From Orbicella franksi (Eukaryota), in NCBI GenBank assembly GCA_964199315.1, contig OZ116699.1, positions 12,524,001 to 12,588,000 of the forward strand: 64,000 nt of DNA, read 5' to 3'. Below, piece after piece: positions 2,561 to 57,600 of the stretch. The translations under genes and the position numbers were made by a program. Numbering within the stretch: position 1 is the stretch's first letter; the number at the start of each line of letters is the position of its first letter. Under the pieces are notes generated by a model. That model was not told the origin of the DNA and did not search any database. It worked only from the letters and a program-made list of their open reading frames with translations.

Positions 2561-3416
2561 GGTCACTCCAAAAAGCTTACTTTTTTGTCTTCGCCCATAG
2601 CAAGAAAACATTCTCCCAATTTCAGCTTTTCCACTCGCAAAGTTTCAGCCTCTGAAGTGCCCATTATCCAGAGGAACTTCGTCTTCAAAGAAGCAAGGCA
2701 GTCATTTTGAAACTGTCTTTGCAGTCAGGCTGTGTTTACGTGACATCATTCTGTCCGACTCTAAATTGGCGGTAAGGAGAAAAGCCTGCAATCGACTTTG
2801 CATCCTTCACAAGGTCAGGAAAATGTATTTTTTCCAAACGATCATCCACTTTACTATCTTCAGTGCTATCACTTTGGTGGAGTTTGGAGCATGTTTGGCT
2901 CAAAATAATATGGCTCAGGAGCAGCCATAACCCAGAGTGGTAGTTAAAAGGCTAGTCGGAAACCATTTGGACAAAATCTCATGGACGGAATGATGTCATG
3001 AAAACACGGCCTGGATGCTGAGTACTGTTCAAAATGGCAGCATTGATGTTGATGCTTCCTTGGAGACGAATTTCATAAGGAAAATCTGCACTTTAGAGGC
3101 TGAACCTTTGGTGAGTGGCTAAACTTAGTTCAAGGTTTTTATTGGCATTGACAAAAAATATACGTTTTTTGGAGAGACCTCCATTTATACAGTGGGTGGA
3201 CAGAGAGATTGTGGCCTGAGTAAAGCATAATGACCATGGCTGAAGGGCCAAACCTGGACTGCATGATCTGATGCACTCTCTATTAGGCTGATGCAAATAC
3301 CTTTGTTTGGTGTTTGGCCAGGCCTGATAAGCAACATTGCAATTATTGATTTCTTTTATATGGTAATATTAAGGATATCAAGGACATGTAAATTGTTTTA
3401 ACTTTGAACTTTGCAG

Positions 3417-20080: not shown

Positions 20081-22129
20081 TAAATAGCCTTTCTAAATAG
20101 CTGATAGTTTTGTAGCACGATCACCCGTAGTGCTTGTGCTTATGTGCAAGTATTGTAAACAAAGGTTACCCCATTGGCAGACCATTTATATTTTTTGTAT
20201 ATCTGTTGCCATGTGATTGTAGTATCAGACATAATATCATATCCTATTAGTTTCTTTACAGCTAACTTGTTGGTTACTTGTTGTTTTATAGCCGAGCTTT
20301 TTACTTGACCGACACTGCAATAAGCAAGTCTTTGATATTGTTACACAAAGGCCGGCTGTACTCATACAATAGAATTATGGTATATATCAGAGTCTTTGGC
20401 CAGGATCCTCTGCAATGCCAGGCTGAGAATGGTATTATCATCCTTAAAAGCCTTCAGTGTTAATTTCGAAATTGGTGAAGTTCTCACAAACCTGTTCTAT
20501 CTGTTTACATTTTCTAGGCTCACAAAGTTGTTGAAAAGACATAGTCAAAACACAGGAGTATTTTGTTGTGCAAATTTATCGGACGCACGAATGCAACTAA
20601 TTCGAACAGAGAGATTCAACCAGACAGTTCCCGTTCACTGCTGTTGTTATAAAATCTGCTTCACGTTCTTAGCTGGATGTGTATCGCGTTATAGATGCAC
20701 TTGAAAGATTGAAGAGCACTCGAAAATCTAGATTTGCCTTTGGCTACGCTCATTCACGTCCACAGATCTAGAGCCGTTGGTCTATATATATCTTAGCCGG
20801 CAGTGAAAATATTAGTTCAAACAACTAGCTGATCATATAAATATATCATGTACTTTCAGAGCCACCTTTCCCTCGTGCCAAGCAGAGTGACAGGTGGCTG
20901 TGCCGAGGATGAGCGCCTCTCTCATGCTCAGCAAACTCCTGCCGGGATGCATTCCAACGAAACGCAACTGAAGCAGGTCAAGCAGAAAGCATGAAGCTAA
21001 ATCTTTATCATTCACAGTCTCGATGCTCATCGAGACTTCCTCAGCTGAATGCTAATCAAATACTTTTTCAAAACAATAATTATGATTTTAGTACAAAGGA
21101 AACTACGAACGTTAATGGACTAAACAACGTAACGTCAACTTCACCTGAAAGATAACAGTTTTTTTAAGTTGATGACCAAGGTTTTTAAAAAAGCGTTGTG
21201 TAATCCCCACAATTATTCAGTTATTCAGCTAAAAGTAAGAGTAGCTATAGCTGAGTAGCTAAGCTAATAGCTGAGTAGCTATTGAGACTGCAGTCGATGC
21301 ACTTTGAAAACTTCAAACCATGACTTTTCGTAGTTTAGTGAACCAGCCGCACCATGATGAATAACACGCTAATAAAGGTGTTCGGGTCTCACTGTGTTGA
21401 GTTTGACTGGGGGCAAAATTGCATATGCTGGACAGAAATCTAGAAGAAACCGAGGAAAAAAAAGTTTCGATCCAGTGGGTGCACGGGTAGAGAGGAATGA
21501 CGTGCTTCGATCCAGCCACTGACAGAAAATGCAACCAAGCTCAAACCACTGAAAGATGTTTGAGAACACTTTGAAAAGACAGTTCCATGGGCTTAAATAT
21601 TTATGTAGTTGCGACTTTATCATATCAACTTTTTCGGCTTGAAAATTTGAATGTGGCATACACAAAGATCTGGCCTTAGTTTGTGTGAAAAAGTCTTCCT
21701 AGACTCGCACGAAAATGAGCACTCTGATTTGCCCAATAAAACTTCTTACATGACCAGCCAATAGACAGACCATTATTGGGCTACATCCTTTTTACTTACC
21801 TTTAAACTCGAAAATTGAGGGTTTAAGTACTTATTTAATTAACAGAAAAATCAGTCTAATGTTCGAAAGCATAACTGACTTCACGAGACACAAATGATAC
21901 AACCCTAATACCGCCCGCTGATTTCTCCATATTGAAGCAAGTAACTCAGGAAGACATAGTTTGTCAACTGCAGATTGTCACCGAATTTCAGCAGAGCTGC
22001 TTGCTGTACTCCTAAGATCATCACTAACCAGGTGTCGATTAGGAAACGGGCTTCTGAACGAACTAATACACGATATAGTGGGTTTTGAAATATTTGTTCA
22101 ACTGGTCTCGTGGCTCCCAACCAAACACA

Positions 22130-23762
22130 ATGAGTAGCAACACACTGATCGAGGTGTTTGGTCATATCCTGGTCAGTTTTACACGAGGACTGACAGAGCA
22201 CTGCAACTCAGAAGAAACTGAATTCACGGCAGAGTTTTTTGGCTACAGTCCTCTAGAAAGCACTGGCCACGAATGGTATCGTCACGGAGATCTTGATGAG
22301 GACTGCATTTATCAAGAATACAGCGACAGAGAGGTCACAACTTTAGACTTCGTAAGATCCAGCAGAATTAATGCAAGCTTTATTGACGCAGGTTTACCAG
22401 AGGAGAACGAAGAAACACAGGAAGATCAGCAAGATGAAGATAGAGCAATGGCGTGGAAGCGACTCAGACCATCCGCTCTCCGAACGGTTTGTAAATCAAT
22501 GTACATCGGAGCGCTGATTTCTTTACTAACTTCCATTATCATAGGTTCAGTATGCATGGTAATCTGCTTTGTATGCCTCAAAACTGTAAACAACTGTGAG
22601 TTCCACTTAAAGAACGACATTCCACTAAACGTCCAATGGATGAGATCAATTTCTTCTGCAATTGTTGCATTTTTCTATACACTTCGATCTTTGTATTCAA
22701 CTTATTGCTTTTTCGCCCATATCAGTTAATGGGAGTGAAAAGAAAACTGATCCCGGTTGCTTGCCTCGCATATTTCTTGGACACAACTTATCGAGTCGTT
22801 CTACAAGCCCAAGGAATATCTCATTCCAAGCTTTCTACATTGCAGAAACTTCCACTCTATGTTTTGTTTTTTATGAGTGTATGTGGGCAAGCCTGTCTTC
22901 TAACGAATCACTTCCTTCAGCAACGGACAAGGAGACAGCAGATGGCTTTGTTCTTAAAAATGAAAGTTCCTGTCTGTTCTGTTATAATTCTTGCCGATGC
23001 TGTGGTATGTATAATTTACCCACTGTATAACAAGCAAAGTAAGGAAAGTAAACTGCGCCTGGTAATCGCACTCTTTGCTCCTCTCATTGGAGTGTTATTT
23101 AAAGTAGTCTCGCGCATTTCTGTTCAGCAGCTAGGCAACATTACCCTTCCGGGATATGCGTGTGTCCTATTAGCACCATTGTATATTGTGTTTCAGGGGT
23201 TATGTTCCGAGTGTTGCAAGCAGATCTTGATAGTTTACAATCCATGGCTGTTCTTGGATTGATTCACGGCGCTGCAGAAGTCATAGAACGAAGTACCATG
23301 GTTGTCATTGATCACATTTGTCATGTAATATGCAAAAGATCGTCAGCTCCTTGGGGAAGTTTTCGTACTCCTCGCCGTGAGAGACTAATGGCTGATGTCG
23401 CTATCATGAGCATGTTATATGAATCAACAGCTATAGTGTCTGTAGATGGATTATTATTCTTGTATCAATATATGTACTTAAAAGACCGTTCCCTTTTAAA
23501 GCTGCTACAGTGTTTTGCTATCACAACTTCAGCTCAACTGGTAATCGAGTGGTTTTTCACCAGCGTTTCACTAGCGATCGAGACTCGCTATCACAATATA
23601 GCTGTCATGTCTGTTTGGCAAAGAAGACGGAAAAGACACATTTTATTGGCAGTTGTAGTTACTGTCATATTAGCAATATGGATTAGCGCAAACCTTTTAG
23701 ACATGGCATATGAGCGTTTTAAAGAGCCCTTAAATCAGCCTTGTGAAATGCCGTTTGCCTAG
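22130..23762 (+). pseudogene. Intronless multi-pass membrane protein gene with two frameshifts (about 540 aa if repaired)
   Basis: Three overlapping ORFs (22085-22729, 22636-23262, 23160-23762) join into one hydrophobic protein after adding 1 T at 22670-22674 and removing 2 nt at about 23184 (TATAT). Several TM-like segments. Family not named with confidence. Confidence 0.7.
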
Positions 23763-28039: not shown

Positions 28040-31000
28040 ATGCAACCAGAAGTCGTCTTTTTCTATGGTCCTCCTTTTTCGGTGAGTGATCATGCTTTGG
28101 AGAAGATAAACAATGTATATATTTTTTTAAATACTTAAGCTTATCGTTTTTATGCCTCTTCAAGGGAAAGGATTTGTTCTATTGTTATCACTTTTCTCAC
28201 ACACACGAGAAGATTCATCCAGGAGAACTGTTTGAAACTGATCCCAGCCTGAGCCTCAGAGCAGTGATCCTGAAGATTGTGAATGTTCTCAATAAGGTAA
28301 TCATGATTGGAACCTCTTGGGACATTTTACATGTATACCATCTCCTTTGCCCTGGCCTCACGAAATTTAGGAGACTAATGACAATCTAAGTTTTGAAGAA
28401 GGGGATAAAAGGTTCAGTCTTGACCTGACATTAAAACAACATGACATTATTCCGGGAGGGTGGTGCAGATCTCTCAACCTCAAAACACCAAAAATCTGGA
28501 GACTGATGTAAAAAAATCTGGAGATTTCAGTAAAAATCTGGAGATTGATCGACCGACAGACGAAACTAAGTAAACACAGGTTCTAATTAAGAGAAAGTGT
28601 TTTGTTTTTGTCAAAATGTGAGAGACTGGTAATGATGACCTAATTTGGAACAGATGTTCTATATATGGTCATGGACAACAGTCTGTCATGGACATGTGTT
28701 TCCAGTGAACAGACGGATGAAGAACTAAACAGTTTTGTTAAGTTCAACTATGGATTTGTACAGAATTGGCACAAGGAACTCACCTAAGCAAGCCAAAACT
28801 GAAATTATACAAAAAAATTTATCCTTTCAGCTTACACCTCTATTTATCGTGAAATTTGTCTGTCTCAGTGTGAGACTGTGAGATTGAACTGAAAACTGTG
28901 AGTCTCACGACAAAGTCATGAGACTTGAGAGGTCTGAGTGACTGGTGGGTGGACTCCTACATAAAATGGATGGGGGTGCATGTCACACCTTTTAGGAGTC
29001 AAACAGGGGTTTTGGTACTACTAAGGGTGTTCAGCCTTAAAAGGTTCACAGCAGGAGCTTTTGCGGTGAGGCAAAAAAAGTCAATGTCAGTTAATGTGTA
29101 GTTTGAGAATTGGTACCTCTTAGAGGTGAAAGCAATTCAAGCCATGCCCACAAAACATTATCTTGGTTCTGTTTAGGGGTTCTTTTCAAAATTTCTGACG
29201 AGCACCCCCGTCCTTATTTATAGGAGTTCTCCCTGATAAGATCGAGTGTAACTCTGCATACCTATTCTAGCAAGTGAAATGCAAGCTATGTTACAATGAA
29301 CATCTGTTTTTTACTCTGATGAAGGCAGACAGTTGCCACCAAAAATTCAGTGAACAAAATACCTGCAGATCAGATATATTTAAGTCAAATAATACAAGTG
29401 TATGTCAAGTGTAATTCAGTGGAGAAACTTATTAATGATAGTGAAGATATCAGTCACATCACCTATTGTTATTAAATTATGTGCCAAACAGAGATCTATT
29501 AGGCGGTGAAACAAAGAGTTTTTTCCTTAATTAAAGAGAGAACTCTTTGTCTCACCACCTAATGGTACTCTTTAAATAAAAAAAAAAATTTTGTAACAGT
29601 TACACATATCTTCCCTATAAAACTCTCACAACTATTAAAAGAAAAAATATTCCAGAGGATCAGGAAAATAGAGTAGAAACATACAGTCAAGTAACAAGCA
29701 TTACCATTAAATCCAAAATTATGTTATTCATGATAATGATGGTAGTTCTTAAATATATATATGAGAAATACTTAGTATAGTTAAGTATCCATGTAGCTCC
29801 TGTGCGGCAAAATGATACAAAGTCCCCATGGTTACATTCCCTCCCTCCCTTGATCCATCCATCTTTCCCTTCCTCTCTCTTTTTCCTCCATGTATTGTAC
29901 ATGTTAGTTGCTGAATAAATTGATCATCATTATCTTATAACCTTTTTTAAATGAAGTGGTCTTCCTGTTCTTTCTGTAGAGAAGGCTACATTTTCATTCA
30001 CTTTCTCTGAGTGTGATCCACTTTGGTGTGGGAATAGTATTATATGCAAGCTTGTTTCAGAGTTTCTTAAGTTATGATTAAGTTCAATATCCCAGTCAAC
30101 CTTGGCTTATTGTCACCTCTTTGCACTAACCAGGATTTCTCATCCTGACCACGCACCAGTTCCCTAGGTACAGTGTATCTTATTACCGTTGGATTGGTAC
30201 ATGTATGTATTGCATATAGCTTAGTATTTGAACTGATCTCTTGTCTCGTAAAATTTAGGGTCAAAGTGTGGTTGTGGATGATGATAATACTAGCAAGAAA
30301 ACCAGGAAGTCATACTTGACTGTTCTTAGGAATAAGGTATTGTTTCTTATAATTTGCTGAAGATAGTTGGCATTTTAATCTGCCGCTTGATATGCCTTTG
30401 TACCTTTCTTTCTATTACATATGATTTCCATGCATTATGTTTGAAAGCTATTGTTTCCATTTAGGTTCCACAGTGCCGATTCAGAGTAATTCATTTCCAA
30501 GCATCAGATTCTAGTGCCCAGTTAATTTGTCAGTGGGCCAGAGAATGGGAACTGGCTCATCAGTTTGAATGTTCAGGATTGAAGTCATTGAAGCTGTCTG
30601 AAAAGGTTATTGAACAATGGTTTGAGACAAGAACTGGTAAGAACATGCAGTCATGTATGTATGTAGGGGTGCAAATGTAAGTCAGAGTGGGTGGTAACTG
30701 CATCACTTCTGAGTCAAGTTAATGAAGATTTCAAATATCTTCTCAGAATTATTTCTGTGGATAGTTTGACAATGTTTAAAGCTACTACATCATCCATAGT
30801 GCAGATTAGGTTGAAGATGCTCTCAAGTATACACTTTAAATTACATTTGTAACTTATTACAGTCACAAAAGAACTTTTGCCTCGGTTGTTTTGTTGTATT
30901 CAGAACCAGTCTCTGAAGAAGAAGGGTTCAGCAAGATTGATAAGGTTGATGTTCAGTTGGTGTGTGATACACCTTACGAAGTAAGTCAAACCTTATAATA

Positions 31001-34000: not shown

Positions 34001-37000
34001 AGATGGCTGGCTTTTCATGCTAAAATAATTAAAAAAGTAAATAACTTTATGAAGTGTCAAATGTATTTAGTACTGTTCTGCTAATTGGAGACACTGTAAA
34101 TAAATGAACAAATAATATTTCAAATAGAACAGAAATTTTTAAGAATCCCAACTGGTGAGAGGCTGAGCAGTTGGCTAACTTCATTTTTCACGTTTCGTTT
34201 GGCAGATTAATGCTGTGCATTGTAGAGTGGCAGCACAAGTCCCTGAATATGTCAGCAAGGCAAAGCTAGCATGGTTCGGTTCCCACAACAGGCCTGAAGC
34301 TTGTCTTCCTCTCTTTCGTGAGGCTGTTAAGTCCCAAACCACTGCCAGTGTTCATCACATGTCACCGCAGTGTGTCACTGCAGCAAGGAACTCATATGTC
34401 CATGGAGTGTGCTTTAAAGACTTTGAAACTTTGGGCAGGTGCCTGTTACTTATTAGCATTAATATTATTTTCATTACATCTATCTGTTTTTAAGTGGTGC
34501 TTGCTGCCATTCACCAGTGAAAGAGCCAATGCCACCTGCATAAGGAAAATCCCATATAACGAACAACCTTTTCCGAACTCAGCAAATTTCTCTGACGTGA
34601 TATTAGCCCTTAAATAACTTAGAAGGAGGCAAGGCGTTGAATTTTTGAGCTCGATTATAACGGACAACTGATCAGTTAGAGGGGTTAACAAGTGGTGGCC
34701 CATGAAATCGTGGTTTTACCGAATCACATTATCAAACTGATACTAAGATTTCGAGGAAACGGTTTTTTCAAAACGTAGTGTTACGTAACTGCTCGTTTTC
34801 AAATTCAACGTGAAAATGAAGAAGTCGCGTAAGGAAAGTTCGCGCAAAAATATCTCGTCGGCGGTCTCAACAATACCTTTTAACAAGTACTTTATCAAAG
34901 GGTGGGTGGATAACGCTATCAACCGGATAAGTTGCTATTCAATTAAAAAAAAGCTTCTGCCGGGCTGATTTGTTCAGTTACTCAGCCTTTGAACCCGGGA
35001 GAGGGCAAACTGAACAGTACACATTCATTTAGAAAAGTAGAAAATATGAACGAAATTGATGAATCATGTCATATTGCTGTTTTGGCAGGTTCAACTCCCA
35101 GTACAAACATGCTGCAACACCAACAAAACCAGCATCACATGATATATTCAACTACCATCAGTCCTCCAGTGAACTGAAAACATGCAACTGGGGAAAAGAA
35201 CAAAATGTTCAGTGTAACTTGGTTTCCTCTGAAGTACCTGGAGCAAGTATCATACCAACGGACAAGTCTCCTGTGTGCAGTAAAGTGAATGAAAAGAAAC
35301 GTAAGCTGTGAATTGTTGTTGCCTTATTGTATTGTAAAAAGAAACACGTTATGTAAGTTACCAAAGAGAAACTTTGTTGATATATGAACAAATTATTCCA
35401 AGCATGCAGGATTTAAGCAATTTTTCCGTGCTTTATTAGCCACATCTAAACACGAGAGAATTTGGGAGAATTCGAAACAGTTATGTAAACCTGAGACGCA
35501 TGCTTTTATCAGAGATTTCTCAAAGGTACTCGCGAATCTAAAATGTCACAACCAAGTTTTCGTACTCTCATCTAAACCAGTGAGTGCAGGCGTAGTATCT
35601 CATTTATTTTATAAAACGTGCTTAGAGACCTCGGGGCCCCGTTTCTTGAAAGCCCCGGAAACTTTTCGGGCCCGTAAAGCCATTTTTAGTTCATCTGTAT
35701 CTAACAACAGAGAAGTGTATACGTCTGAAACTTTTTGTATGAAGGGAACCTCTGTTCATATTAAGAATACGTGAATAAAATAGCTCTGTAATCAAAATGT
35801 TCGAGTTTTTGCTATGGCTTTCCGGGTGCGAAAATTTTTCGGGACCTTCGAGAAAAGGGCCCCGCAGTCCCGGGTTGTTCGAAAAGTGGATAATGCTATC
35901 CAGTGGATAGCGTGGTTTGTTTTGTTGACTCTTATTCACTGGATAGCGAATTATCCGGTGGATAGCGTTATCCAGCCTTCGAAAAACCGGGGCCAGGGAG
36001 GTGAAGTTTGCATCCTTCACATTGTGTGAGAATAACCGTCGTTATTGTTGCCGATTTTGTGGTCTTTGTGTTTTTTTTGTTTTTAAATTTTTTCGTCCTC
36101 TAACTCCCTTCTAGTTCCTGACGCTATTTGTCCAAGTCTTATGGTGAAACATTTAACGAGAGAGGTAATTGAGAGCCATGCTTTCAGTTCAGGTCATTTC
36201 AGGCGAGGTGAAGGCTGCACGAAGCTCATCCGTAATGTTAAAAGTACCATGGTGGAAGATGGCATGCAATTTACCTGTCAATGTGAGTACGGTCTCCATG
36301 TGTGCTTTATCTAAACCGCTTTACCGAAATTGTTTTGCTGAACAGATTACTTATGCTGCTCTGCACATTGTGGCCGCTTTTCATCTGTCCAAAGAGTCTG
36401 GTTTCAATTTCCGGATACTCCCCTGTGATTGGGACATCATGTTTAGGTTCACAACCTTGTTTCAGTTACATGTATACCCAAATATTCGAATTGTTCGTTC
36501 CATTCAATTTTGCTCCCGTAATTTATGCAGTTTTCGGAATTCAGTGATTTCTATTTCGGAAATTCCGCAGTTTTCGAATTCTCTACAAACTTTCTCGGGA
36601 AAGTTTCTGTCCATTGGCTTCCATTCCTAGTCTACCGAATTTTCTTCACTGTACTTTGGTAAGCGTTTTTCAAAGAAATTTAAATTCGCGTAGGCTGTGT
36701 TAAGTTCCCAGCTATAGGATCTCGGCGCTCTTACATTTTGCTGTCAGTAGATCTTAGTTCAGCCATGTGTTAGGTGTAATTGATAACTGACGCTCTGGTG
36801 CTTGTGTTGCCGGTTTTTTATATCACAGCAATTGTTGTATGGGACATTTATTTCCTGGTATTTTTCTGTGCTGTTGGAGATGGACTGCTGATATTTTGTT
36901 TTCCCAACAGGTATCGGGTCCCAAGGTCAATTCTATGATGTGTCAGCAGTCGTCAGTCAGAAAGGTAGGTAAGCAAACGGCCATGTTAAGGTGATATTCA

Positions 37001-40000
37001 TCACAAGACCCTTTCTAAACAGATTAGGTGCAAACATCGGATTGGATAGGATTTCCGTTACTCTGTGACCTGTTATCAGTACCGCCTACCTCCTTTTGAT
37101 CCCATCGGGTGTTTAAAGCGACAAAAAACGAGATCCAGTTCTGGGAAGTGTTCCTCTGGACCGGCCCTGTGTGACGCATCCTACCTGATGGCGTCATGGC
37201 AATAGATTTACTCCCAAAAGTGTGCGTAATAGATTGTCGTTGATCTGGTGATCTTCCCTTTGAACTGCTCTACTCGTGTTTCAAAATGTTTCGTGTGCTG
37301 CGCGCCTTACCGTTGCCAACTAGGAAAGTTATTGATTAGTTTTTGACCCCTTTGTGACATCTTTTCGACAACTTCAGATGGCTTCCGTTTCAAATGGCCA
37401 ATCAAACTTGTCGCTGGTCTCGAACGTTCGCAGGTTGAGACTTTTTTAAATTCCCGCTAGAGTGAATGATGAATTTGACAATTTTACATCTCCGCCCTCG
37501 ATAGTTCCCATGTTTTGATTGGCCTACTCAAATAGAAAGTAGCAAAAAATTGTCAAAAATAGGTCAAAATTTAATAAAAAACTTCAAGTGGGATCGGTTC
37601 GGTGTAAGAACAATTTAGTGGCATCTCATTTAATGGTTTAGTGTATGCATCATCATTGTCATTTAGCTACCAAAGACGATCAAACTATGTGACAAAGAAG
37701 AGGTGTTATCTTCAAATATGGAAAACAACCATTGTTACTGTTGTAATTTTGTGGTCATTGTACTGACAGGTCTTGAACGAGCTGGGTGTTGTTGTGCTGA
37801 TCCCGCAAGTAAGCTGGGAAGATGTAAACATGCAGTTGGCTTGTTACTTTGGTGCAAGAATGAGAAAAACGTACGTTATCTTGAAGCTATGTTGGAGTTT
37901 TATGTTGCTCTTTCTGTAGACATTTCCTTTCGTTATTACTTGTATGGAGAACATACTCATCGTCTAAGGGCAATCAGTGCCCAGCGAAACGGCTGAAATG
38001 GCACTGAGAACATGATTATATCTTCTTGTTATTTTTTTGGTGGGGGGGAGGGGGGTTGAAGGACAGGGGAAGGGTTGGCAAAGCACCCGATAATTTCTGC
38101 TGCTACTGTGCTGAAATCTGATTTGGTTATTGCGGCTTTTACGTTGGCTTGAATAGAACTGTAATTGTTTCCAGATAAGAACTGTACTTGGAGATAAAGT
38201 GAATGTGAAGCTTGTTGTCATTGCAGATGAAAGAAATTAAGAAGGCCGTGCCTTCAAGCAACCTGGAACATGTGATTACAACAGCCGCAAAACGAAAGGT
38301 AGCAATGGAGCAGTAAGGTGTTACTCTTTTACATCATGTTTATCTTATTAGGTTGTTAACTTGCGTCGGAGAAACCACATAACCATTTGCCAGCTAATCT
38401 GATGGCTGCCCCATACGGTGATCACTACCTATAATCATCTTTGTCCATTCTTGAACCACTGAGAACCTCTCGCAATTTCTCCATCACACCGAACAGCGTT
38501 CCACTTTCAAAAATACAACCTATGCCACCATGGAAACTGGTATCTACAGTGTCAGCGACACTGCAACAAACGCCAACATATTACAAACGAGTAAGATCCC
38601 TGCAACAGTCAACTGAACATAACTAAAACGAACAAGAGAAAGCATTACACAACCTGTAACATCTGTGCTGGGTGATAAAGGAAGATAACGCTGGCGCTGC
38701 ATTGTAGACACCTTTTGCCATGAGAAGCATAAAGAAATAAGTTAGTACGTCAGTTTTCAGTATAAATAACTGCGAAAGGGCGTTGGCTACCAAACCCACT
38801 AAACCCACAACGCATGGCTCTGTGTTGCGTCCATAAGTTCAGGGTGTCTCTGGAACAATTAGCCGCGTATAAAAACAGCAGCAGATTCATGCTTGATTCA
38901 AGCCACAGAAAATTTCTATCAGCAGTCGTTTTGCTCGACCAAAGCAGCAGAAACCGACCGTCCATCATCTGGGGTAGCACACAAAATAAGTTGCAAACAG
39001 TGCAATTTTGTATGCTATGGCCAAACCGAACGATCACTGAAGACGCGGGTTCCCGAGCACAAAAAGGCCGATCATAGTTCTAAAGTTGCGCCGGGGAGCT
39101 ATGTCCACGATTGTTATCATCAGATGGACTCACACAACGTCAAAGTCGTCCGTCATGAGCCACACTGCCACCAGCGGCTTTTCCTTGAAGTTTGGATGTG
39201 GGAATGACCACATATATCCCAGAAATCTACAAATGCTTAGCACGCGCTTTAAGTTTTAATCTCGCGAAGGACCAGCTGAAGAGTTAGCTGAAACGTCTTA
39301 GTATCATCTACAAAATATGACTCAGTCACAAACATTTATCAGTTGTTTCAACGACCTCTTGCAAGCTATTACGATTATTTTCACTATATATAGGAAGCGA
39401 TATGTGATGTGTCTTCAAAAGGGAGGGAAGAAGAAGTTCCCTCGACTTTGCGGAAAGATAAATCATTGCCCAAATGGATTTCATCTCTAGCACAGGTAGG
39501 ACGTGCTATTATTGCAAAGTTATGTTACCTAAGTAATTATAATGGACAAGTTTACACACTACTTTACCGTGCAATTCTCACAACAAGTTTACCTTTCAAC
39601 TTGTCTTGTAGTCCGCTTCACACGACGGTGATCGAGTAAAGAGACCGAAAGCAGAAGGCACAGTCACTACACAACGCCAGAAGAGGTAATGAGAAGTGTA
39701 AGGAATCGATGTCTTCTATGTTAATCAAAGAAGTTACAATTCCCGTGTATTGCAGGTTCAAAACGAAAAAGAGCGCAGAAAGCACAGTGTATTGTTTGAG
39801 TCCAGAAGAACTGCTTCAAACAGCTCAGGAAATAATAGAATGGGTGAGAATCACTTTATGACTTAAGCCGACATCTTATGTCCAAGCAACTATTAACTAA
39901 CTGTTTTATTGCTTTTCTTTTTTCGTAACATTCATTTTGTAAAATAGTATCGTTCCTCCTCGAGTGACCACGGCGTCGACAAACACAAACAACAGGGAAC

Positions 40001-41791
40001 TGATCACAACAGAAGCCGATACAAAGACAGTAGACAGGTGGAACGGAGGTCTAATCAGAGTTCATACATAAAGAAGGAGCCTTATCAGAGAGTGTGTAAC
40101 AGGTACGGTGAAGCAAATGAACGAACCACCCAGCCACCCTCACTTTGCTCTCTTAATACCTGACGGAATCATCTTTGATTACATTCTTTAGAGCATTAAC
40201 TCCTAGCAGAGTTTGTTCACTGTAAAGTTTTTGAGTAGAGTCTTTTTGAAGTCCATAACCAACTAATTTCAAAACACAAGTACTTTGTGCAAGAATCTCA
40301 AATTTCGAACAAAATCATTCGACAATAGCTAGCTTACTAAATGCATCATCGCTCAGTGAACTTGGCTTGCCTAAATAAGCACGTTTTTGTAGATGATTTG
40401 TCGGCTGTCAGTTAATTTCAGTAGAGGGAATGGATGAACATGAAATTTCTCCTTTATTCGGCAATATACTTTCAAACAAACAAGTGATTGAACTGGTGAG
40501 AACAATTTGCCTGCGTATATTGCGTTGTTGTCCAAACCAATTTAGGGCAAAACTCGCATTGTGCCTAAAGAGCGCCCAAGCGAGAATCAAGTGACTGGAA
40601 TTGTTTACAATGTCGAGTGTAGATCGTGTTCGTTTGTATACATTGGCGAAAGCAAAAGATCTTGGAATTCTCGGGGGACAGCACAAGCCTGGCACAAGAG
40701 GAAACAATGAATCGGCAATTAAACAGCACGCGGAAACGACTGGACATGATATCTATCCCAACTATGTAGAAGTACTAGAGCGTGGCGTTACCAATCGACA
40801 AAAACGCTTATATCTATATGACTAGCTCCGTGAGCGGGCAAGATGAATCAAATCTTGCGCTGTGATTGCAAATCATGCAAATTACAAAATAATTGATTCA
40901 AATGTGATGACCTGGGCAAACGTCACAAAAATACACACTCCCCCATTTGCCAAACGCCATTTCCCCCATGACGAGCATACGCTGTACAAAGACAAGTTCG
41001 CGACCGGAAACGAAATTCATTGCTGACATCAACACCACTGCTTATGACCGCTGTTCAATTGTTGTTCGCTAACAAAAGCACGGTCAAGCATTGAATAGCT
41101 GTCGTCTCCGATACGCTGTTCTCAGAGCTGCATGTAATTTTTCACAATTAATTGCCAAAGCAAGGCCCGACGAGCACTATATTTCAGCATTTCGCCAGCA
41201 AGTCCTAGCAGTAACAAGCCGCCCATCAAGTGAATAAAACGGGGACACGTGCTTATTCCCGTGCTTTAATGAACTACAATTTGTGAAATAGGATCGACGC
41301 AAGTTCGACGTTTGTTACCACGCTGGAATTAAGTCGACTCTTTGTCGCACCTATTTTCAGTTTATTCGACGCCATTTGGATTCGACGTTTGCCCTACTAG
41401 GCCTAAGTGAATAAGAAGTAAGGATATCTGACGCGATATGCAAACTAACCTGAGTAGTTTGTTTGACTGCTTCAGCCATTTTCTTTTCTTTTGTAGAGAA
41501 AAACTGGATTCTTCTGTAAACACTGATGTTTATAGCGAGGAAGCAATTGTCAGAGAAAGCTGTCAGCAGTCTTTGTCGAACTGCCCAGATGTTGGTTTAA
41601 TAAGTGAAGTAATTCCTGAATCTGTTGCAATGAGCACACCAGAATGCTACTCTAAAGAAAATAACCCAACTATTCATGAACCACCCTCACGAATGAGAGA
41701 AGCTGATAAATGCATGCAGGAAACACAGCAAGACATCACTGACCGGGAGAAACATGAACCAGTTACATCAATACTAGACGAGTTTATTTAA
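28040..41791 (+). CDS. Uncharacterised multidomain protein: PNKP-type kinase-like + degenerate HAD-IIIA + SWIM zinc finger + CYREN/MRI-like C-terminus (about 833 aa, 21 exons)
   Basis: Phase-consistent, stop-free GT-AG exon chain: 28040-28081, 28165-28296, 30259-30336, 30465-30636, 30904-30980, 31784-31949, 32281-32339, 32872-32991, 33622-33693, 33827-33856, 34206-34438, 35089-35300, 36115-36282, 36911-36964, 37770-37870, 38227-38298, 39394-39495, 39612-39685, 39756-39843, 39948-40102, 41497-41791 (2502 nt). Motifs: GPPFSGK, GQSVVVDDDN, EEGFSKI, RPPNPG..IDL, AAGVKSIK, CCCAD...CKH, KSLPKW, TVYCLSPEEL, SILDEFI*. Confidence 0.8.
35633..35863. mobile_element. MITE, same family as 26896-27125, opposite orientation
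   Basis: GGGGCCCCGTTTCTTGAAAG...CTTCGAGAAAAGGGCCCC termini. The internal sequence is the reverse complement of the 26.9-kb copy. Confidence 0.75.
35870..35997. mobile_element. Second MITE abutting the first (TGGATA-repeat family)
   Basis: CCGGGTTGTTCGAAAAGTGGATAA ... TTATCCAGCCTTCGAAAAACCGGGG inverted termini with internal GTGGATAGCG repeats. Confidence 0.65.
38380..39290 (+). mobile_element. Degenerate Penelope-like element fragment (RT tail + GIY-YIG endonuclease)
   Basis: ORF 38893-39207 reads GVAHKISCKQCNFVCYGQTERSLKTRVPEHK...H.MD..NVKVV..E.H.HQRLFLE, a Penelope GIY-YIG pattern with decayed motifs. Confidence 0.75.
40490..40830 (+). mobile_element. Second Penelope-like GIY-YIG fragment, frameshifted
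   Basis: GIVYNVECRSCSFVYIGESKRSWNSR / HKPG...SAIKQHAETTGHDI...VEVLERGV.N..KRL, spread across two frames. Confidence 0.78.
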
Positions 41792-42264
41792 TGAATACTT
41801 CAACATGTACAGATTGTGTCATAACACAACATAATTATGATGATACCGTCACATTTTTCACTTATTTTTGTTTAAAGCAAACGAAGGAAAAAGAAACCAA
41901 GTGTGTTGTTTTGCTTTCTGAGGAGACAGTTATATTTGTCATACGCCGATACTCACCTGGACGTTCAGTTTATATGGTTTGGGAGATCAGAGAGTGTTGG
42001 CGGCGTTGATCATAGCAAATGGGGCTAGCACAGAAATGTCGGTTAAAATTGGCCTATTGAGGGTTAAGTAATGTTACTGCAAAAGGTCGTGTTCAAAGTT
42101 CGCATTATCCAGTTTCATCGTTGTGTAAAGTTTGTTATATTTTTAAATTAAAATCTTCTAGGATTTATCTTGGTTGTTTCTTGTTAAGCATGAGTCATAT
42201 TCCAAGGCCAATTCAGTCTCATTATCAGACAAAAGACAGTTTGTTAACAGCAATTGTTGTCAGC

Positions 42265-45200
42265 CTAAATTCCTTCATTTCCTGTTGTAATTGTGTGCCT
42301 TTTCGCATTTGGTTTGGAAATCTTTTCCTTTATTGTAGCATACACATCCTGTACCGGTCCTGCCCTCTGGACATTGTCCCTGATGCGATGAATGTCATTT
42401 CCCAGGGGTCTGTACAATGCTACAACTATGACGTATTTGCCGCTTGGACTTGGTGCTGCACCCATTCCTAATTGAGTGGTGTCTTTCCAAACCATCTGCG
42501 TGAAGTGCTTCACTTTATCGTTCAGCTCTGGATAAGAGAAGCTGAAAGCCTTCTTTTCACTGTACCATATCGTTGTCGCCTTCAGAGGCGCTCTCGGTAG
42601 GTCGTGCCAAATCTGAGCGATGTTCTCACCGACTGGCTCCCCTTGGAAGGTGGAAGGGTCGCTGGCTACAGATTCTGCTGTGCGCTGGGCTTGTTCAGCT
42701 AGGGTAGCATTCCACTGAAGAGGGAACACGTGATGCATCGCCCTGAGTTTGTTATGAGCCACCAGGGCTTCTTGAAATACTGCATCTGTTTTGATAGAGA
42801 ATAGTAATACATTTTCCTGTGTCACATATGGACTTCAGAACTAAACAAAATACAGATTTTCCCCTTCCATTTACCCTTCAAGCCCCAGTGCAAATGTAGC
42901 ATTTTTCTTATAGTGCAAGTTATGGAACCTTTCTACCTTCCAAAAACTCTGTTACCTCGTTTGTATCCCACAATTTAAAACTGAAAACCTCGATTCTCTA
43001 AATCGCCACCTTCTGTCGATACTTACTGCTGCCAGTGCTGCTCCTGTTACTGGGGGTGACACTGGTGATGATGTTGGTGGCCATGGTAGGGTTGGCCAAG
43101 GTGGTGGTGTTAGGAAGAGTTCCAGTTCCACTGGTATTTTTGGGCTTATCCTCCTGTTTAACGACGGCAATGCTGTCATTCTGAGGAGATTGGATGTTTC
43201 TGTTTTCATCATGCCTCTTCTGTTGATCTGCTTTTTCCTCGGCGATGTATATCTCGAGGGTTTTACGTGAAGCGGCTTTTGGTGGGTATCATGCACATGC
43301 AGGGGAAAAAAATTGAACAGAGTATGTCTATCTTTAAATGGAGATCTCACCCAGAGTTATCTTACTACCTCGAATGAACATCTAAGACACCTGGCAAACT
43401 TTCTCTTCGCGAAGAATATACTGGAATCTTCAGAAGCTGATTCACCCGTATTTCTTCCTTAGATGTATAAGCCGGACAGAATGGACTGTTTGGCTGACTG
43501 AAAGCTCCTGAATTTCTTAGTTGTTAATACTCCGACTAGTATCACGAGTACTGAGAGGGCGTTTAAACGAGTTAGGGGGGTAACAGTGGTGCAACACCTC
43601 AAACTAGCTGCGAGATTAGCTTCCTTGCAAAACGTGAGCCTCTCGGTAAAGTAAGTTACTAATTATTTCTATGCTCTCTCTATATACGCATTTGTCAACT
43701 GGACTGAACAAGGGATTATTTACGCAAGTAACTCACCTTCTGCAATGGACTCTTCTGGCCCGTATGCCGATTGCTTGTCATCTTCAGCCCCGACCAGTAA
43801 ACCTTTGTTCTTTAGCTTGTTCAACTCTTTTCCCAAAAAATGACCTATTATAGAATACAAAGTATCATATAATCAATACTCTAGACACATCTGTAGGAAA
43901 ATTTATGTTTTCTTTTAACTAAAAATGAGATTTAATTGAAGAACACTCTTCAGGATTTTACTGACCGAATCGAATATAACGGGCAAGGCCTTTCTCTGGA
44001 AGGAAAGAGTTTACAACTGTGTGCTCCGTATAAGTTGGACATGTTTTTATTGTAACCCACCTGGTCGCCTTCCATCTTGGATGATAAATTTGTCGTCATC
44101 CTGAGATTTGTATGGGCGCACAGCATCGAGTATCTCCTCCTTATTTCTCTCTCTTCCCGTTACTTCACTTAATATGTCTGTAGCAGGAGCTGACGTATCG
44201 TTTAATTCTTCCTCGTATTCACGTGTTTCATCAGTACCATCTGTAAATGCAACAAATCATCTTTGTGCGGTACAACCATCCCCGCCTCTAATGTGACGCG
44301 AATGGAGTAGTCCAAAGGCATTCAATGAACGTTTCTGATTACCATCTATACAATGGCTTTCCACTGACATAATTTCTTGGTACTATCGAGTTCACTTGAA
44401 ATATTAGTCTGCTTCTTAGCTCTCGGTCACTGTCCTCGTGAATGAAGGATGACGGATTATTTGCGTGGGTGATATGTAGGAGGGATGTTAAGATATAACC
44501 CTCAGGATTGCCTCCTACTTCAATTCCCCGAATGTTCCTTACACGAGATTGCCCTCAGTGGGGCCGATAAACAAAAGATATGAATCATGTGAATCTAGAA
44601 AATGAAAATGACTAGCAAATAGTTAATGTGCTAAAGAAATATCAATAAAGTCCTTTCAGAAGTGTCAACTTTAGAGGCTCGCTAATGGTGTTAATTACGT
44701 CGATACAGTTTATATACCTTCTGGAAGTGGCCTTTGAACTTCAATTCGCCTGTTACCTCGTCCAATCAACGGACTCAGAGATTTTGGTTTCTTTGTTAAG
44801 ACAACACCAGTATTGATCAGAACATCCGAACTCTTCTTTGTTGCATTTGCAATAAGTACGTGGTTTGTCCTAGTGTTGTGTGGACCCAGTTCTGCGTAGA
44901 GTTTCATAAATATACAGGATACAAACGTCAGAAAAAAGGCTCTCTCCAAGAGTTACAGGGATAAATGACCCTGCTACAATTGGTTTGCAATTCATGAAAT
45001 TAAAGGACCACTGTGAATTGCAGCATATAACCTAAGTGACATAATGAGATGAATTTTCACTTTTGTGTTATCTACACAGGCATCAACTACGACAACGAAG
45101 TTGTAACTACTTCTCGTGCAACACACCTCAGAGAATTTCCACGCAATGCCGTTGTTCTTCACGAACGATAACACGCGTTTTGTTTTGTACTTTTAGCTAC

Positions 45201-47349: not shown

Positions 47350-50300
47350 TCATTTGACATTTGCTAAACGTTTTCCTCTTTTAAATGTTGCATACAAATC
47401 AAGTTTAACTCCAGGTCGCAGGATGTTTTGCCGTAAATGGCCCTCACTAGAAATCGGTGGATCGTAAAGAGCGACGACAAAAGCATATTCTCCATTGACG
47501 CTTTTAGCTATAGCTAGTCCCATTTTTTTCGTTTCTTTCCATACAATTTGCACAAAATGTCGAGTTTTATCGTTTATCTTAGGGTACGAAAAACTGTACG
47601 ATTGAATTTCACTGTACCACTTCTCTATTGCCTTTTTGGCCGTACTTTCTCCAGTATACAGTATCTGAGCAACACTCTCCCCTTGCGGCTCTCGCAGGTC
47701 GTCCAAAGTAAGGAAATCTTTTGATGCCAAACTTTTAGCAATCTTCTCAGCCTTTCTTGCTAAGGAAACTGACCAGGACAGCGGTGGTGAGAAATGCTTG
47801 GTTCTGAGCTTGTTGTGCTCTTCCAACGATTCTCTTTCCACTTCATCTAAGATAACATGGTAATGATTAACATGTTTGAGTAAATGCGAGTAATTATAAA
47901 GTTAACTGAGTTTATCGTAATTCTGCAACATCAGTGCTTTGTGATATACCTGGACAAAAACGTTTTCGACAAGTTTTTGTTTGAAGCAAGTCTTTTTGAG
48001 AGCATGTGGTGACGAGGCAGATGCGTGCTCTCACAGACGTTCCTTTTCCACACGTCACTGAGCACGTGGACCAGTCGTTCCATTCACTGAACGAAACATC
48101 TGAGGAACAGATATCCAAGTCAACAGTTAGTATAATGTTGTAAAAAGCGTTAAAAGATTCTTGATTTGCTTCATAACGTTTCGCGCAATAAATCCACTGT
48201 AGAACACAAAACTATTGTTTTATCTGAATACTTAAGGAAAGCTCAATCTTTCCAAACTTCTCTATTATCTCAGGTCATCAAGCTGTTTCAACCTGTGACT
48301 GCTCTCGCTTTGCACACACTTTCGCGACTTATATAACCTATGGCAAATACTGCCATAAAAGAATAACATTTTTCAATGATTTTGTTGTTATTAAGGTGCT
48401 GACCTTTCTCGCTGCGAGTGTCATCATTTTCATCCTGAGGCGTTGGATGTATTGGATAGTAATAGAGATTCTTCAGCGAGACACTTGTCGGTATGTATCT
48501 TGAGGATTTCGTAGGAACAGATCTTGTAGCCCCTGTCCCTCTCAAATAAGATATGATGTTTTCAATTTTTATAAGGTCTCCTAAGGAGTAAATATCCGAT
48601 AAAGGATCATTGCTTTGCTGGTTTCTTCGGACGCCAGTTGACGTTGGCTTTTTACCATTTCCATAATCACGTGTGTGGCTGTAATGAAGCTGTGTCTTCC
48701 CCTTAAGTTGTGGTTTTTTGAAAGCAAGTTTTGTGCCAGGCGTTTGTTCGACTCCTTTCCAAGTTTCTTCCGCTTTTTGATTCATTAGCTGCTGTTCATC
48801 ATTGCCATGTGATCTAGTATTGTGTTCGGCGCTACGAGTTCCCTCACCTGTGTTCTTCGCTGTACCTTTTCCAGTTTCATAGAAAACTTTGGGAACTGAA
48901 AATGTCACTGAGGATGTGTCGGAATTCGAATTCTGGATAACTTTTGTTTCGCCGTGACGAGGTTTCACGACACTATCTACCTTAGACGATGTACTAGGTA
49001 TTTTTCCATCGTTTCCAACTTCATCACGATCAGTGGGTATGTGCTTGATACTTGTTTGATCTAATGTTTTGCTGTTGTCGAATTCTTCCTCCCTGGTATG
49101 AGAAATATTTTGGGTAGCTTTACCCTGGTTGATAATCTTATCCTCTTGGCCTTTGTCGATGTTGTTCTCTTGACTTTTTAATATGTGAGTATTTTCAATC
49201 ACTTGATTGTTTTTAGCGTTCTGCGTTTCGTGGTATTTTAGTTCCTTCGATTTATCGTTACCATTTGCATGATTTGTTTTGATATTGGCAATTTCTTGAC
49301 CATCCTTGATGACGTTGGCATTCGATTCTTGCTCATGGTTGTTATTCCCTTCGTCTTCCATCTCGCTATGTACAACCTTATTACTCTCTTTTTCAGAAAC
49401 CTCACCACTACCACTCTCGGAAGTCATATCATTATTGGAGTCGGTGTCTGCGTTATCATCGTCAGATGCATTGTATGCGTGAGTGCTTTCATCATCCTTT
49501 CTTTCACTATTTCTTCCACGATCACCTTTTCGCTGATTACGATCTGAGATATTGTCATTTAACATTGAAATATTTTCTTCACCATCGGAGTTTAATTCTT
49601 CCTCGCGGTCGTCCTGGTCTTGGTATTTTCTTCCAAGGTTTTCAAAGTTATTACTTTGGACGTCAGAGTTGACTAGATTATCGGTATCATCAACATTCTC
49701 GTAGTTATCAATATTTACGAAGTTGTCTAATTCTTTGTATAATTTTGCATCCTGGTTCTCTATTTGTTGGTTAAGATTCTTCATGGAAGATACTCGAGGT
49801 CTTTGCTCATCATACTCTTCGCTATCTTTATCATCTTCGTCGTACGATCTATCATCAATGGCACCGTCGTCAACGCCGTCACTAATACCATCCCATGATT
49901 TTTGCCCTTGGTCCCTGTTTTCATATTCAGAGAAGTCATCATGTTGGAAGTCATCATATTTGTTTTTCCATTTTGTTGTCTTGGCAAGAAGCTTGCTGAT
50001 CTGAGCATTAATGTGATTCGTTGGATCATCTTCATCTTGATCGTAATCTTGGAGAGAGTGCAAATTACTGTCGTGTGCAAACGAAGTGCTGTCCTTAACT
50101 GACGGGCCGTGATGTCTTCTACTACCGTCATTTCTGTGATGGAAATTAGAATGGGCATTATATTCAGTTTTGTCTTGATTTTCCTTATGAGTGGAGTACG
50201 TGTTGTGACTGAAACTATCTATATTTCCTAACACACTACTGTCCTCAAAGGACTTCACGTTAAAGTCGTTAGGATCTTTCATAAGCCAGTCAATAGCTTC

Positions 50301-54604: not shown

Positions 54605-57600
54605 CTATTTTCCACTTTGTGGCTTAGGCGTATGGACGTTAATTCTCTCTTCGTTCCTTGCGTTTCCAGGCGGACTGTAAAGCGCTACCACAAATGTGTG
54701 TTTTCCATCCCTACTCTTAGCTTCCCCAATTCCAAGCCATTTGGAGCTCTTCCATATGAGCTGGGTAAAGTGCTTGGTGGAACCATCGATCACTGGATCG
54801 TCGAAGTTATAGCTTTTGACCTCACTGTACCAGTCAGCGGTTGCTTTCTCGGCTGCGATGTCATAACTGTGCCATAGCCGAGCGACGTTTATACCTGAAT
54901 GTTCCTCTTTTAAATCCGACAAGCGGATGGCATTGTTGGCCAGTTCATTTGCTATTGCTTGCGCCTTAGCAGCCAAACGTTGTGACCACCTCAGCGGAGG
55001 ACTTTTATGCCATGTTCTGAATTTGTTATGCAGACGAAGTCCTGCTCTTCCAAGTTGTTCTGAAGGAAGTTAAGAAACGACATTAACAGAATTCAATACT
55101 GTAATGAGTGATTCAACGTTAAAACAATCCATTGTTTATCTTCCACTGGGTTAAGACACCTGCCCGTCAACGCCAACACACAATTTACTCCTTTTCTTGA
55201 TCGCTTAAATGACAGCAATTTAACTGACAGGATATTATAAAGAAAAGCCGGCTGCTCCGCAGATGACCGATTGTACTGCAACTGCCTCCAGAGGTCTGCA
55301 ATACTAGATTACTTACGATTTGAGTTCGAGTACGAGTACGAGATAGAGTGCGAGAACGACTTTTGAATTGTAGTTTGCAGGATCCACATTATCACAGGGG
55401 CCCTGGAAACGTCACTGGTTTGATATTTGAGAATCGTCCTTGCACTCAATCTCGCTCTCGTAGTCCAATCTAAAGGTCTCTATAGATCTGACTGACAAAA
55501 CAATCCTTCGGAGAATTTAGAGTTTTGGGATAAAAAACAAAATGTATATCTTTTGAAAAAAGGGAGGATTCATGCAACCTTCCTTCATTTGTTTCATTCT
55601 TACAGTTTGTCCTTCATAATTTATCATTCAGTAACTGCAACTTTTTGGTAAGTCTTACCAGTACAGGGCTGCATGAAACAAGCCTTGCTTTCCGTCTTAT
55701 GTCCCTTACATTGTGTTCCCTCGCACAACTGAGCTCTTGCTTGAATGCCTTGACCACAAGTCACTGAACATGGCGACCATGTGTTCCGTTTATCTGAATG
55801 TTGTACAGAAATTTATAGTATTTTCTCTTGGAATTCAGTCAATTTAAAATATCGATCTTAGGAGCGTGTCAGCGATTTAAACAACTTCTTTTTTTCCAAA
55901 ACATCGACGACCAAAAGGCAGTTGCTTCAATGGCAAACACACTGAGAAGTTAAGATCATTTTATCTATTTCGTGTTTCAACTGCATGTGGTGCAGGAACG
56001 TCTTTCATACTTCTAGTAGGTCGCTATTGCACTCTACTTTTAGCCAATCCTCGTAACGTCGCTAATCAATATTTGTCTTTTAGTATTCTCAGCTTTAAGT
56101 TCAAGTTGTGTTGTTGATGACTGTTAACCCTGAGGACAATAACGAAGGTTCTGGCTTAATTAATTATTATATTTTTAGTCCAGGGCCCCTCTGGATATTA
56201 GCCTCGTCGGGGCCACCTTGGCTAAATAAAGTTTACCTTTACCCTTACCTTTACCTTTACCTTTCCGTGATCATGTGGTGTCCCTTAATCTTAACTTTTA
56301 TGTAGCGAAAAGGTATGATCTACATGGACCGTCAACCTTAACGCATTGGGTGTGACATAACTTATAACAAAAGTGACCTTTTCAGGGTTCCAGATAAGTT
56401 TTCAACGCTGGTTGTCGAAAACGAATTACAGCGGGTCGATTTCCACTGCTCCCACCAATTCATTTTTAATTTTCTATTAATTTTTGGGTCATGTAGCTGA
56501 CCTTGTAGAGTTTTTGACCTGAGCCCCCCTACTTATCTGGAATACTGCCTTGTGGTCGCAGATCGGGTGGTTTCATAGTGTACCCATTTGTGGCATATCA
56601 TAGGGGATGTCGAGATGCATTGTTTCTTGAGAATGTTCCGATAAGTTAAGATTAAAATCCTTTAAAAACTTGCATCTACTGATTCACTGGAATATATTAG
56701 CGTCATTCCATACAGACCCAGTGCAGCCGAGGATAACGCAATTGTCCATTTCGTTGAAATCAAATGAAGATGACCAAAAATAAATTGAGGAAATACTAAA
56801 CGTAACAAAAATACCAAAATACCAACCATTCTTCGCATCAGTAGTTGTTCTCCCTAAGTCGTGATCTGGGCCAAAGATCAGCCTTGCCCTGTTTTCAGGA
56901 GAGCCCTCTATAAACTTAGAAGGCCTGAGGAAACTCTTCAAGGACAACATCTTGTTCTTTTCCTCACTTTCTCTTAGTTTTAAACCAGGAGGAAATATAT
57001 CAGATGGGGGTGATTGCCCTATTCCGGCAAAGGAAACTCGATTGAGCTCGTTGTACTTGGTTGGGGACATGCTTGAGCTCCTTTGCATATCATCGAAATT
57101 GCGACCTTTTGTTGGCCTCGCAGAGGCCGGAACGTTATAGGCGTCTTGAAGAACGCCATTTGCAGTACCGTCGTTTTCTTGATTTAACTTGTTATTCGTT
57201 TTCCCAAGGATCTGCCAGCTTAGTATTTCATTGTTTGAGCCAGTTTCGCCATGACCTTCAATCATATTTCCTTTCTTAGCAAATTCCTGCATTGGAGCTG
57301 TCTGGGTTTCCCAGAGATAATGGTTCATAAGTTCGGCATCTGTAACGATTTGATGTCTGGAGCTGCTATCGTCCTTTGTATTTTGAGCAGCTTCACTGGT
57401 AATCACTTTGTTTGTGTCTGAATTCATTAATGTGACGTTACCGGGTATCTTAAGCACTAGCGATCCGTCATTGCTAGTGCCTGCCTTGAAACTAACTGGT
57501 TTTCCTGCACCAGAAATTTTTAACGTAACAAAGTTTTCCTTTTGTGAGTCTTCGTCCTTGGATTGAATGAGGTTATTCAGCGATGGTCTGTCAACACCGA

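Follow-up and report, generated by a model that had tools for sequence, protein, structure and literature searches.

The window analysed here is a stretch of 64,000 nucleotides of the coral Orbicella franksi (NCBI GenBank assembly GCA_964199315.1, contig OZ116699.1, positions 12,524,001 to 12,588,000 of the forward strand), and all positions are counted from its first letter. Its plus strand harbors a spliced and expressed gene for a SWIM zinc finger protein, whose C-terminal tail of about 237 residues carries three short motifs, namely a Ku-binding-motif (KBM)-like segment, a strand-helix module and a conserved C-terminal end. An earlier note on this DNA had compared the three to human CYREN (also termed MRI or C7orf49), a vertebrate microprotein that acts as an accessory factor of non-homologous end joining (NHEJ). 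The peptides are found at the places given there, with RKDKSLPKWIS within 39394-39495, TVYCLSPEELLQTAQEII at 39784-39837 and VTSILDEFI plus the stop codon at 41762-41791, and they follow each other in the same order as in the human protein. Two of the three motif resemblances exceed chance, the third does not.

RNA evidence over 36500-42300 was taken from two contig sets of independent runs, X8 (polyA) and X13 (cDNA), as well as from the raw polyA runs X23 and X24, which contribute few stranded reads. The RNA contigs and a few raw reads define the GT..AG joints 36964>37770, 37870>38227, 38298>39394, 39495>39612, 39685>39756, 39843>39948 and 40102>41497, giving one plus-strand mRNA in which the SWIM zinc finger (..FTCQC..GRCKHAVGLLLW..) and all three motifs share a single open frame, closed by the stop codon. 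In the raw-read depth of X23 and X24 the first mate lies on the minus strand, as expected for plus-strand RNA in a stranded library. The noted span 39394-41791 begins exactly at a genuine exon start, 39394 being the first base of exon A and preceded by AG; within it exon C2 (39948-40102) had been overlooked. This exon restores the frame, since without it exon D would be out of frame. The tail had been taken for part of a larger protein, and this is borne out by RNA that joins it to the SWIM-finger exons and to further exons upstream, so that it is not a small stand-alone protein.

In spliced coordinates, one RNA contig continues for 255 nt beyond 36911 towards the 5′ end. The exon ending at 36282, which is conserved in two orthologous loci (L003 and L004, see below), probably starts near 36111, and same-strand exons upstream of the SWIM finger, likewise conserved in L003 and L004, can be traced at least as far as 30259. 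Exons A and C are each present as a single copy in the 497-Mb assembly, for which reason transposon-borne repeats were rejected as their source; a distribution of the motifs over different genes or frames was rejected as well, the spliced frame being continuous. The introns harbor plus-strand open frames at 38863-39204 and 40546-40822 which, by our own reading, resemble mobile-element fragments (CxxC..GIY-like and ..IKQHAETTGH.. peptides) and which gave no match in a Pfam search. A spike in RNA contig depth at 40768-40961 (~6,360 in X8, ~1,230 in X13), accompanied by many loose ends, points to a highly expressed repeat family and not to the gene itself.

Exons and motifs of the SWIM-tail gene and the neighbouring gene array (positions in the window)
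Feature	Position	Strand	Evidence and remarks
SWIM first-half exon (..FTCQC), 3′ end	36255..36282	+	Loose RNA contig ends at 36911 match 36255-36282, then GT
54-nt exon within SWIM region	36911..36964	+	Joint 36964>37770 in X8, X13 and 2 raw X24 reads; conserved in L003, L004
SWIM zinc finger second-half exon (..GRCKHAVGLLLW..)	37770..37870	+	RNA joints; 70-94% identity in 8 other coral loci
72-nt linker exon	38227..38298	+	Joints 37870>38227, 38298>39394
Exon A, 102 nt, in-frame (phase 0-0); 3′ half carries the Ku-binding-motif-like LRKDKSLPKWISSLAQ	39394..39495	+	RNA joints
Motif 1 core K-S-L-P-K-W-I; coral consensus KSLP[KN]W[IV]	39460..39480	+	Invariant in 8 lineages
Exon B, basic linker (..RVKRPKAEG..QRQK)	39612..39685	+	RNA joints; orthologous exons found
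Exon C, basic run KTKK, then strand-helix module	39756..39843	+	RNA joints; at least 12 coral sequence variants
Motif 2 TVYCLSPEELLQTAQEII	39784..39837	+	Present in every coral lineage sampled
Exon C2, 155 nt, Ser/Arg/Lys-rich linker	39948..40102	+	Joints 39843>39948, 40102>41497 in X8, X13 and 2 X24 reads
Exon D, last coding exon, stop 41789-41791	41497..41791	+	RNA joints; orthologues found
Motif 3 TSILDEFI; consensus [TA]SILD[ED]F[IV]-COOH	41765..41788	+	Invariant block in all 10 lineages with the terminal exon
3′ untranslated region, at least to 42300	41792..42300	+	X8 contig continues to 42300
CAP/PR-1 array	42265-42825, 47350-47841, 54605-54976, 62386-63015	-	Pfam CAP E-values 3e-19 (42265-42825) and 1e-20 (47350-47841)

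A HMMER search with exon D against 1.84 billion representatives returned fragments only, i.e. open-frame calls on other coral contigs and the 250-residue product of a transcript contig (P0006), on which the Pfam SWIM model gives a weak match. From such contigs and further database searches 11 orthologous genomic loci were obtained (L003-L006, L010-L017). They are syntenic, as the SWIM exon recurs upstream in nearly every locus that is long enough and a CAP-domain gene recurs downstream on the opposite strand in most of them. A tree calculated from the SWIM, exon C and exon D sequences separates two clades with support values of 100/99 each, clade 1 comprising (window, (L004, L003)) and clade 2 comprising L010, L011 and L014-L017. 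The tail evolves fast, with only 30-50% identity between lineages in exon D, and shows sharp conserved islands; motifs 1 and 2 are such islands across the two deep coral clades, and at least 12 sequence variants of exon C were recovered among corals. All three motifs are conserved in other corals, with the restriction that exon A is lost in one lineage; a lack of conservation in other cnidarians had been named by the earlier note as refuting its reading. AlphaFold2 models an orthologous stretch as disordered; the exceptions are an extended segment over T-x-Y-x-L-S, of moderate confidence, and, directly after it, a helix of high confidence (predicted local distance difference test, pLDDT, ~93).

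APLF-type Ku-binding motifs, known in APLF, WRN and CYREN, have conserved Pro and Trp residues downstream of a basic patch; the human CYREN motif reads SETKTRVLPSWLTA (PMC4831024), and its contacts to the Ku80 vWA domain are made by R11, P14 and W16 (bioRxiv 10.1101/2025.11.28.691009). In the alignment coral K-S-L-P-K-W-I is placed on human R-V-L-P-S-W-L. The sequence variants are LRKDKSLPKWISS in the window and in L006, LRKNKSLPKWISS in L004, LRKGKSLPKWIAS in L014, LGKGKSLPKWISS in L015, GRKSKSLPKWIVS in L016 and REKNKSLPNW[VI]SS in L010 and L011, so that the A-type succession of a basic patch, Pro and Trp, and a hydrophobic residue is kept as [RG]K.KSLP[KN]W[IV] in 8 lineages of both major clades. 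Comparison of exon A between the window and L004 depicts 9 synonymous and 2 non-synonymous changes in codons 19-34 versus 1 synonymous and 12 non-synonymous changes in codons 1-18, a contrast which points to strong purifying selection on the motif half alone. L006 and L004 also retain the splice sites of exon A. Aligned with the 237-residue tail, the published human KBM attains a score of 27 in the position where it would be expected, a value reached by 94 of 20,000 shuffles, and a loose KBM pattern has a single match outside the orthologous exons in ~410,000 six-frame residues of the DNA examined. A PDB sequence search with exon A and the orthologous tail gave chance matches only. KSLPKWI is a variant of the APLF/CYREN-type motif in which Lys replaces the core Arg; its resemblance to the human motif exceeds chance and is conserved.

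The second motif follows the coral consensus T-hydrophobic-Y-[CF]-L-S-P-[ED]-E-L-L-[QH]-T-A-x-E-[IVM]-[IL]. In alignment A2 all 7 sequences share K-x-K-K and, after it, T-x-Y-x-L-S-x-x-E-L-L-x-T-A-x-E-I; compared with the human string, 11 invariant positions of this alignment comprise 5 identical and 4 similar residues. In human CYREN residues 49-81 form a conserved multimerisation domain with a strand at 53-57, including 54-YCMN-57, and a helix at 58-81 with V64, L66, I68 and L69 (bioRxiv 10.64898/2026.07.22.740027), and T52, V53 and Y54 engage in β-strand pairing with the HEBO domain of ERCC6L2 (bioRxiv 10.1101/2025.11.28.691009). The coral T-V-Y-C is identical to human T52-V53-Y54-C55, and the amphipathic pattern is common to both as well. 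Ungapped alignment of the human core string with the 237-residue tail yields a score of 40, which none of 20,000 shuffles reaches. The human core string employed was that of the earlier note, 10 positions of which are confirmed by papers; the human strings given there agree with the literature, namely the KBM and the XLF-like motif (PMC4831024) and, within the core, T52/V53/Y54, 54-YCMN-57, V64, L66, I68 and L69 (bioRxiv 10.1101/2025.11.28.691009, 10.64898/2026.07.22.740027). The resemblance of motif 2 to the CYREN core exceeds that of shuffles and lies on an island conserved in corals. Homodimer prediction for P0006 residues 74-122 gave a score of 0.01, which speaks neither in favour of self-association nor against it.

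Less of the comparison remains at the C-terminus, where the earlier note had seen an XLF-like motif in VTSILDEFI. The human counterpart is VLKYVREIFFS (PMC4831024). Phe is penultimate in all lineages with the terminal exon, and C-terminal location and a conserved Phe are shared with XLF-like motifs. A basic patch directly before the aromatic residue is missing in the coral tail, since Phe is preceded by L-D-[ED] and the nearest basic residues lie at least 7 positions upstream. Anchored at the C-terminus with a shift of 1-2 residues, the human XLF-like motif scores 2-6, reached by 249-588 of 20,000 shuffles, and the Ku80 ending, anchored and ungapped, scores -3, reached by 2,436 of 20,000. The likeness is not significant and the residues before Phe are acidic instead of basic, so the designation as an XLF-like motif is not supported. 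In L006, the closest of the orthologous contigs, the last exon (2739-3008) shifts frame near 2913, and ..ARTSILDEFI stands in another frame than the first 58 codons, with the called product P0002 ending early; this is either an assembly error of the metagenome contig or a real frameshift allele.

Taken together, the coral tail shares with CYREN a disordered segment with an APLF-type Ku-binding motif and, ~40 residues on, a T-V-Y-C strand with an amphipathic helix, followed by a conserved aromatic-bearing motif at the very C-terminus. The spacing from Trp to Thr is 41 residues in the coral and 36 in human, and loose patterns for the first two modules co-occur in order in none of 200,000 tail shuffles. 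The linker between these two modules is basic, as presumably is that of human CYREN. In contrast, the coral module forms the end of a SWIM-finger protein of much greater size, whereas human CYREN is a stand-alone protein of 157 residues (isoforms 69-157). The coral tail furthermore differs by Lys in place of the core Arg and by its acidic C-terminal motif (SILDEFI), which in human is basic-aromatic (VREIFFS). CYREN/MRI has been reported as conserved among vertebrates (PMC4831024). With APLF and WRN the coral protein has in common a basic patch and L-P-x-W-hydrophobic in a disordered region of a larger protein, an arrangement in which the motif links a body with enzymatic or scaffold function to Ku80 (PMC4831024); it differs from them in that they have Arg at position -5, and it is devoid of the FHA/PBZ domains of APLF and of the helicase/exonuclease domains of WRN. 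Its end resembles the C-terminal motifs of Ku80 and XLF/PAXX as a short conserved motif at the extreme C-terminus, acidic plus hydrophobic/aromatic, on a disordered tail; here the sequence match is not significant and the coral lacks the basic patch beside Phe.

These features are best accommodated by a reading to which we assign a probability of about 45%, namely that the last ~237 residues constitute an intrinsically disordered, CYREN/MRI-like adaptor tail which would tether the multi-exon SWIM protein to Ku and perhaps to ERCC6L2. Each binding step of this scheme is a proposal. The Pro and Trp of module 1 (KSLPxW[IV] with basic residues before it) would occupy the pocket of the Ku80 vWA domain in the manner of the APLF, WRN and CYREN motifs, and docking of module 1 would bring the folded body of the protein to Ku-bound DNA ends. 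Module 2, the T-hydrophobic-Y-C strand with its amphipathic helix, may act like CYREN 49-81 by β-strand pairing with a partner and/or by self-association, a candidate partner being the HEBO domain of ERCC6L2, the published CYREN partner. Module 3 (SILD[ED]F[IV]-COOH) could be a conserved C-terminal docking motif for some reader. Genes for both putative partners are present in the same genome. The HEBO/VIGSSK exon of an ERCC6L2-like gene is found at G000:C14:8416956-8417036 (L007) with 27.7 bits, above the cut-off. Profile searches located exons of the Ku core on both contig 6 and contig 8, and the Ku80-specific Ku_PK_bind exon on contig 8, where the Ku80-like gene (Ku core and Ku_PK_bind) occupies G000:C8:16460065-16467070 (L018) with its vWA domain split over many exons. 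A six-frame genome search with Ku_N (PF03731) gave no match, which carries no information, given that the Ku core and Ku_PK_bind models both found matches.

Several observations weigh against such a tethering function. The minimal core R-x-x-P-x-W is not present, its first position being Lys in every coral. Exon A is absent from the L003 genome and from the same-lineage transcript P0006. In L017, a contig of 3x coverage, exon A is broken directly after KSLP, without Trp, and module 2 reads TFCC, with Cys where Tyr is invariant elsewhere (1717-1794 and 2176-2256); these changes could be due to sequencing error or could mark a lineage in which both modules decay together. Loss in L003/P0006 and disruption in L017 imply that Ku binding is dispensable there, or that the motif serves another role. 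The loss in L003 is secondary, since this lineage is nested in an exon-A-bearing clade (95/93), and a recent gain of exon A was rejected on the same grounds. In module 2, only I68 and L69 of the four human helix positions changed in the 4A4D mutant (V64, L66, I68 and L69) correspond to hydrophobic residues in the coral. The human XLF-like motif misses the C-terminus of the 237-residue tail altogether, its best free score of 8 being reached by 14,098 of 20,000 shuffles, and the shuffle statistics as a whole are optimistic, because the patterns were defined after the match had been seen. The Pfam MRI model PF15325 (100 positions, gathering cut-off 27 bits) gave no match at E<=10 on single exons, on P0006 or its part 40-130, or on the spliced 81-residue stretch with modules 1 and 2; a six-frame genome scan with the same model, uninformative for short exons, gave no candidates. 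Neither the HMMER search with exon D nor word-indexed database searches returned anything other than coral fragments, with no CYREN and no precomputed MRI domain among them. In the ESM Atlas the orthologous tail reached scores of at most 0.77, with SWIM-containing clusters only and no MRI cluster. The earlier note had proposed a cnidarian CYREN homologue and had itself reckoned the absence of a reciprocal hit against it; profile and reciprocal matches are indeed absent. Owing to the silence of PF15325, the corals-only searches and the Lys at the core position, the tail is not filed as a member of the CYREN family. The proposal of a CYREN-like mode of action is based on modules 1 and 2.

The main rival reading, which deserves some credence, is that the modules are conserved linear motifs, short in length, which serve partners having nothing to do with Ku or ERCC6L2, and that the likeness to CYREN is coincidental. 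Module 1 could then be a nuclear import signal or a ligand of some other Trp-pocket reader, and module 2 a generic helical docking or dimerisation element. The lack of any profile or database link to CYREN, the exchange of the core Arg for Lys and the loss of exon A in one lineage fit this explanation, as do the basic runs around modules 1 and 2, which by our own reading resemble nuclear localisation signals; moreover, more than 600 human proteins match R-x-x-P-x-W, most of them untested (PMC4831024). Coincidence would, however, have to account for two independent matches to one and the same small protein, with order and spacing in agreement and both on conserved islands, and among the four identical residues TVYC are three published partner contacts. 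A sub-question of the adaptor-tail reading, with which it overlaps, is that of common descent, in which the tail would be a true CYREN homologue, ancestrally the C-terminal tail of a larger SWIM-finger protein and retained by vertebrates as a microprotein. We regard this as possible, though less likely than not. The evidence for an adaptor tail applies to it equally, and in both proteins a splice junction lies shortly upstream of TVYC, 9 residues upstream in the coral, in phase 2, and, in human, after residue 46, five residues before T52, as deduced from isoform MRI2 sharing only residues 1-46. The basic linkers between the two modules, that of human presumably included, point the same way. 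Common descent is at odds with the absence of a hidden Markov model match, of bridging sequences and of anything outside corals in the searches, with C-terminal motifs that do not match, and with the independent origin of Ku-binding motifs in the unrelated proteins APLF, WRN and CYREN (PMC4831024).

A narrower alternative, which we consider improbable, concerns module 3 as an acidic-hydrophobic C-terminal binder of a PIKK (e.g. DNA-PKcs) in the manner of the Ku80 end (EEGGDVDDLLDMI), or else as a divergent XLF-like motif. The C-terminal DNA-PKcs motif of Ku80 is conserved in invertebrates with DNA-PKcs, including Cnidaria (PMC8549938). The invariant ending of the type [IL]-L-D-x-[FM]-I would be in keeping with the former assignment, and the C-terminal position with conserved Phe with the latter, whereas the scores of both comparisons are weak against shuffles and acidic residues take the place of the XLF-defining basic patch beside Phe.

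The folded body upstream of the adaptor tail offers some further detail. Putative first exons at 28040-28297 on the plus strand encode MQPEVVFFYGPPFS / GKDLFY.., a Walker-A-like G-x4-G-K-D in which Asp replaces Ser/Thr, read as GPPFS/GKD across the first two. The conserved plus-strand exon 30259-30348 (SVVVDDDNTSKKTRKSY) recalls the DNTN segment of P-loop kinases of the polynucleotide kinase (PNK) type. A Pfam search with 16 stop-free N-terminal stretches of the gene found nothing usable, and the AAA_33 model, searched in six frames through the genome, matched 22 places, none of them in the SWIM-tail gene. From motif reading only, the N-terminus may be called PNK-like.

Directly downstream of the SWIM-tail gene lie tandem single-exon genes of the CAP/PR-1 type (cysteine-rich secretory protein family) on the minus strand; most orthologous loci have a CAP gene there too, again on the opposite strand, so that the neighbourhood is conserved. 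Elsewhere in the window, 3960-7225 on the minus strand is a retrotransposon pol remnant, consisting of two long open frames with Integrase_H2C2, rve, RNase H and an incomplete reverse transcriptase, situated where the G+C content is elevated. A coiled-coil-like open frame of 264 residues is located at 17734-18528 on the minus strand, and overlapping long open frames with many hydrophobic segments at 22085-23762 on the plus strand represent a candidate multi-pass membrane protein; Pfam gave no match for two open frames from these two regions.

With respect to known systems, the coral tail would be a variant of the Ku-binding-motif adaptor tail. Whether CYREN inhibits or stimulates end joining continues to be debated, and its bridging of ERCC6L2 to Ku has been described only very recently. 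It is possible, though we hold it unlikely, that the pairing of a Ku80 motif with a T-V-Y strand-helix predates the split of cnidarians and bilaterians and began as the tail of a SWIM-finger, maybe PNK-related protein, of which corals would keep the long form as an undescribed end-joining scaffold and CYREN would be a remnant. Even if the likeness were convergent, the tail would still be a clean example of a selected K-variant of a Ku-binding-type motif. If the adaptor reading is true, the logic of a Ku-plus-ERCC6L2 adaptor would be ancient, and lineages that possess the Ku-motif exon, lack it or have it broken would form a natural separation-of-function series. Furthermore, a new candidate for an end-joining factor would be at hand in animals for which maintaining the genome under UV and heat stress is of ecological importance.

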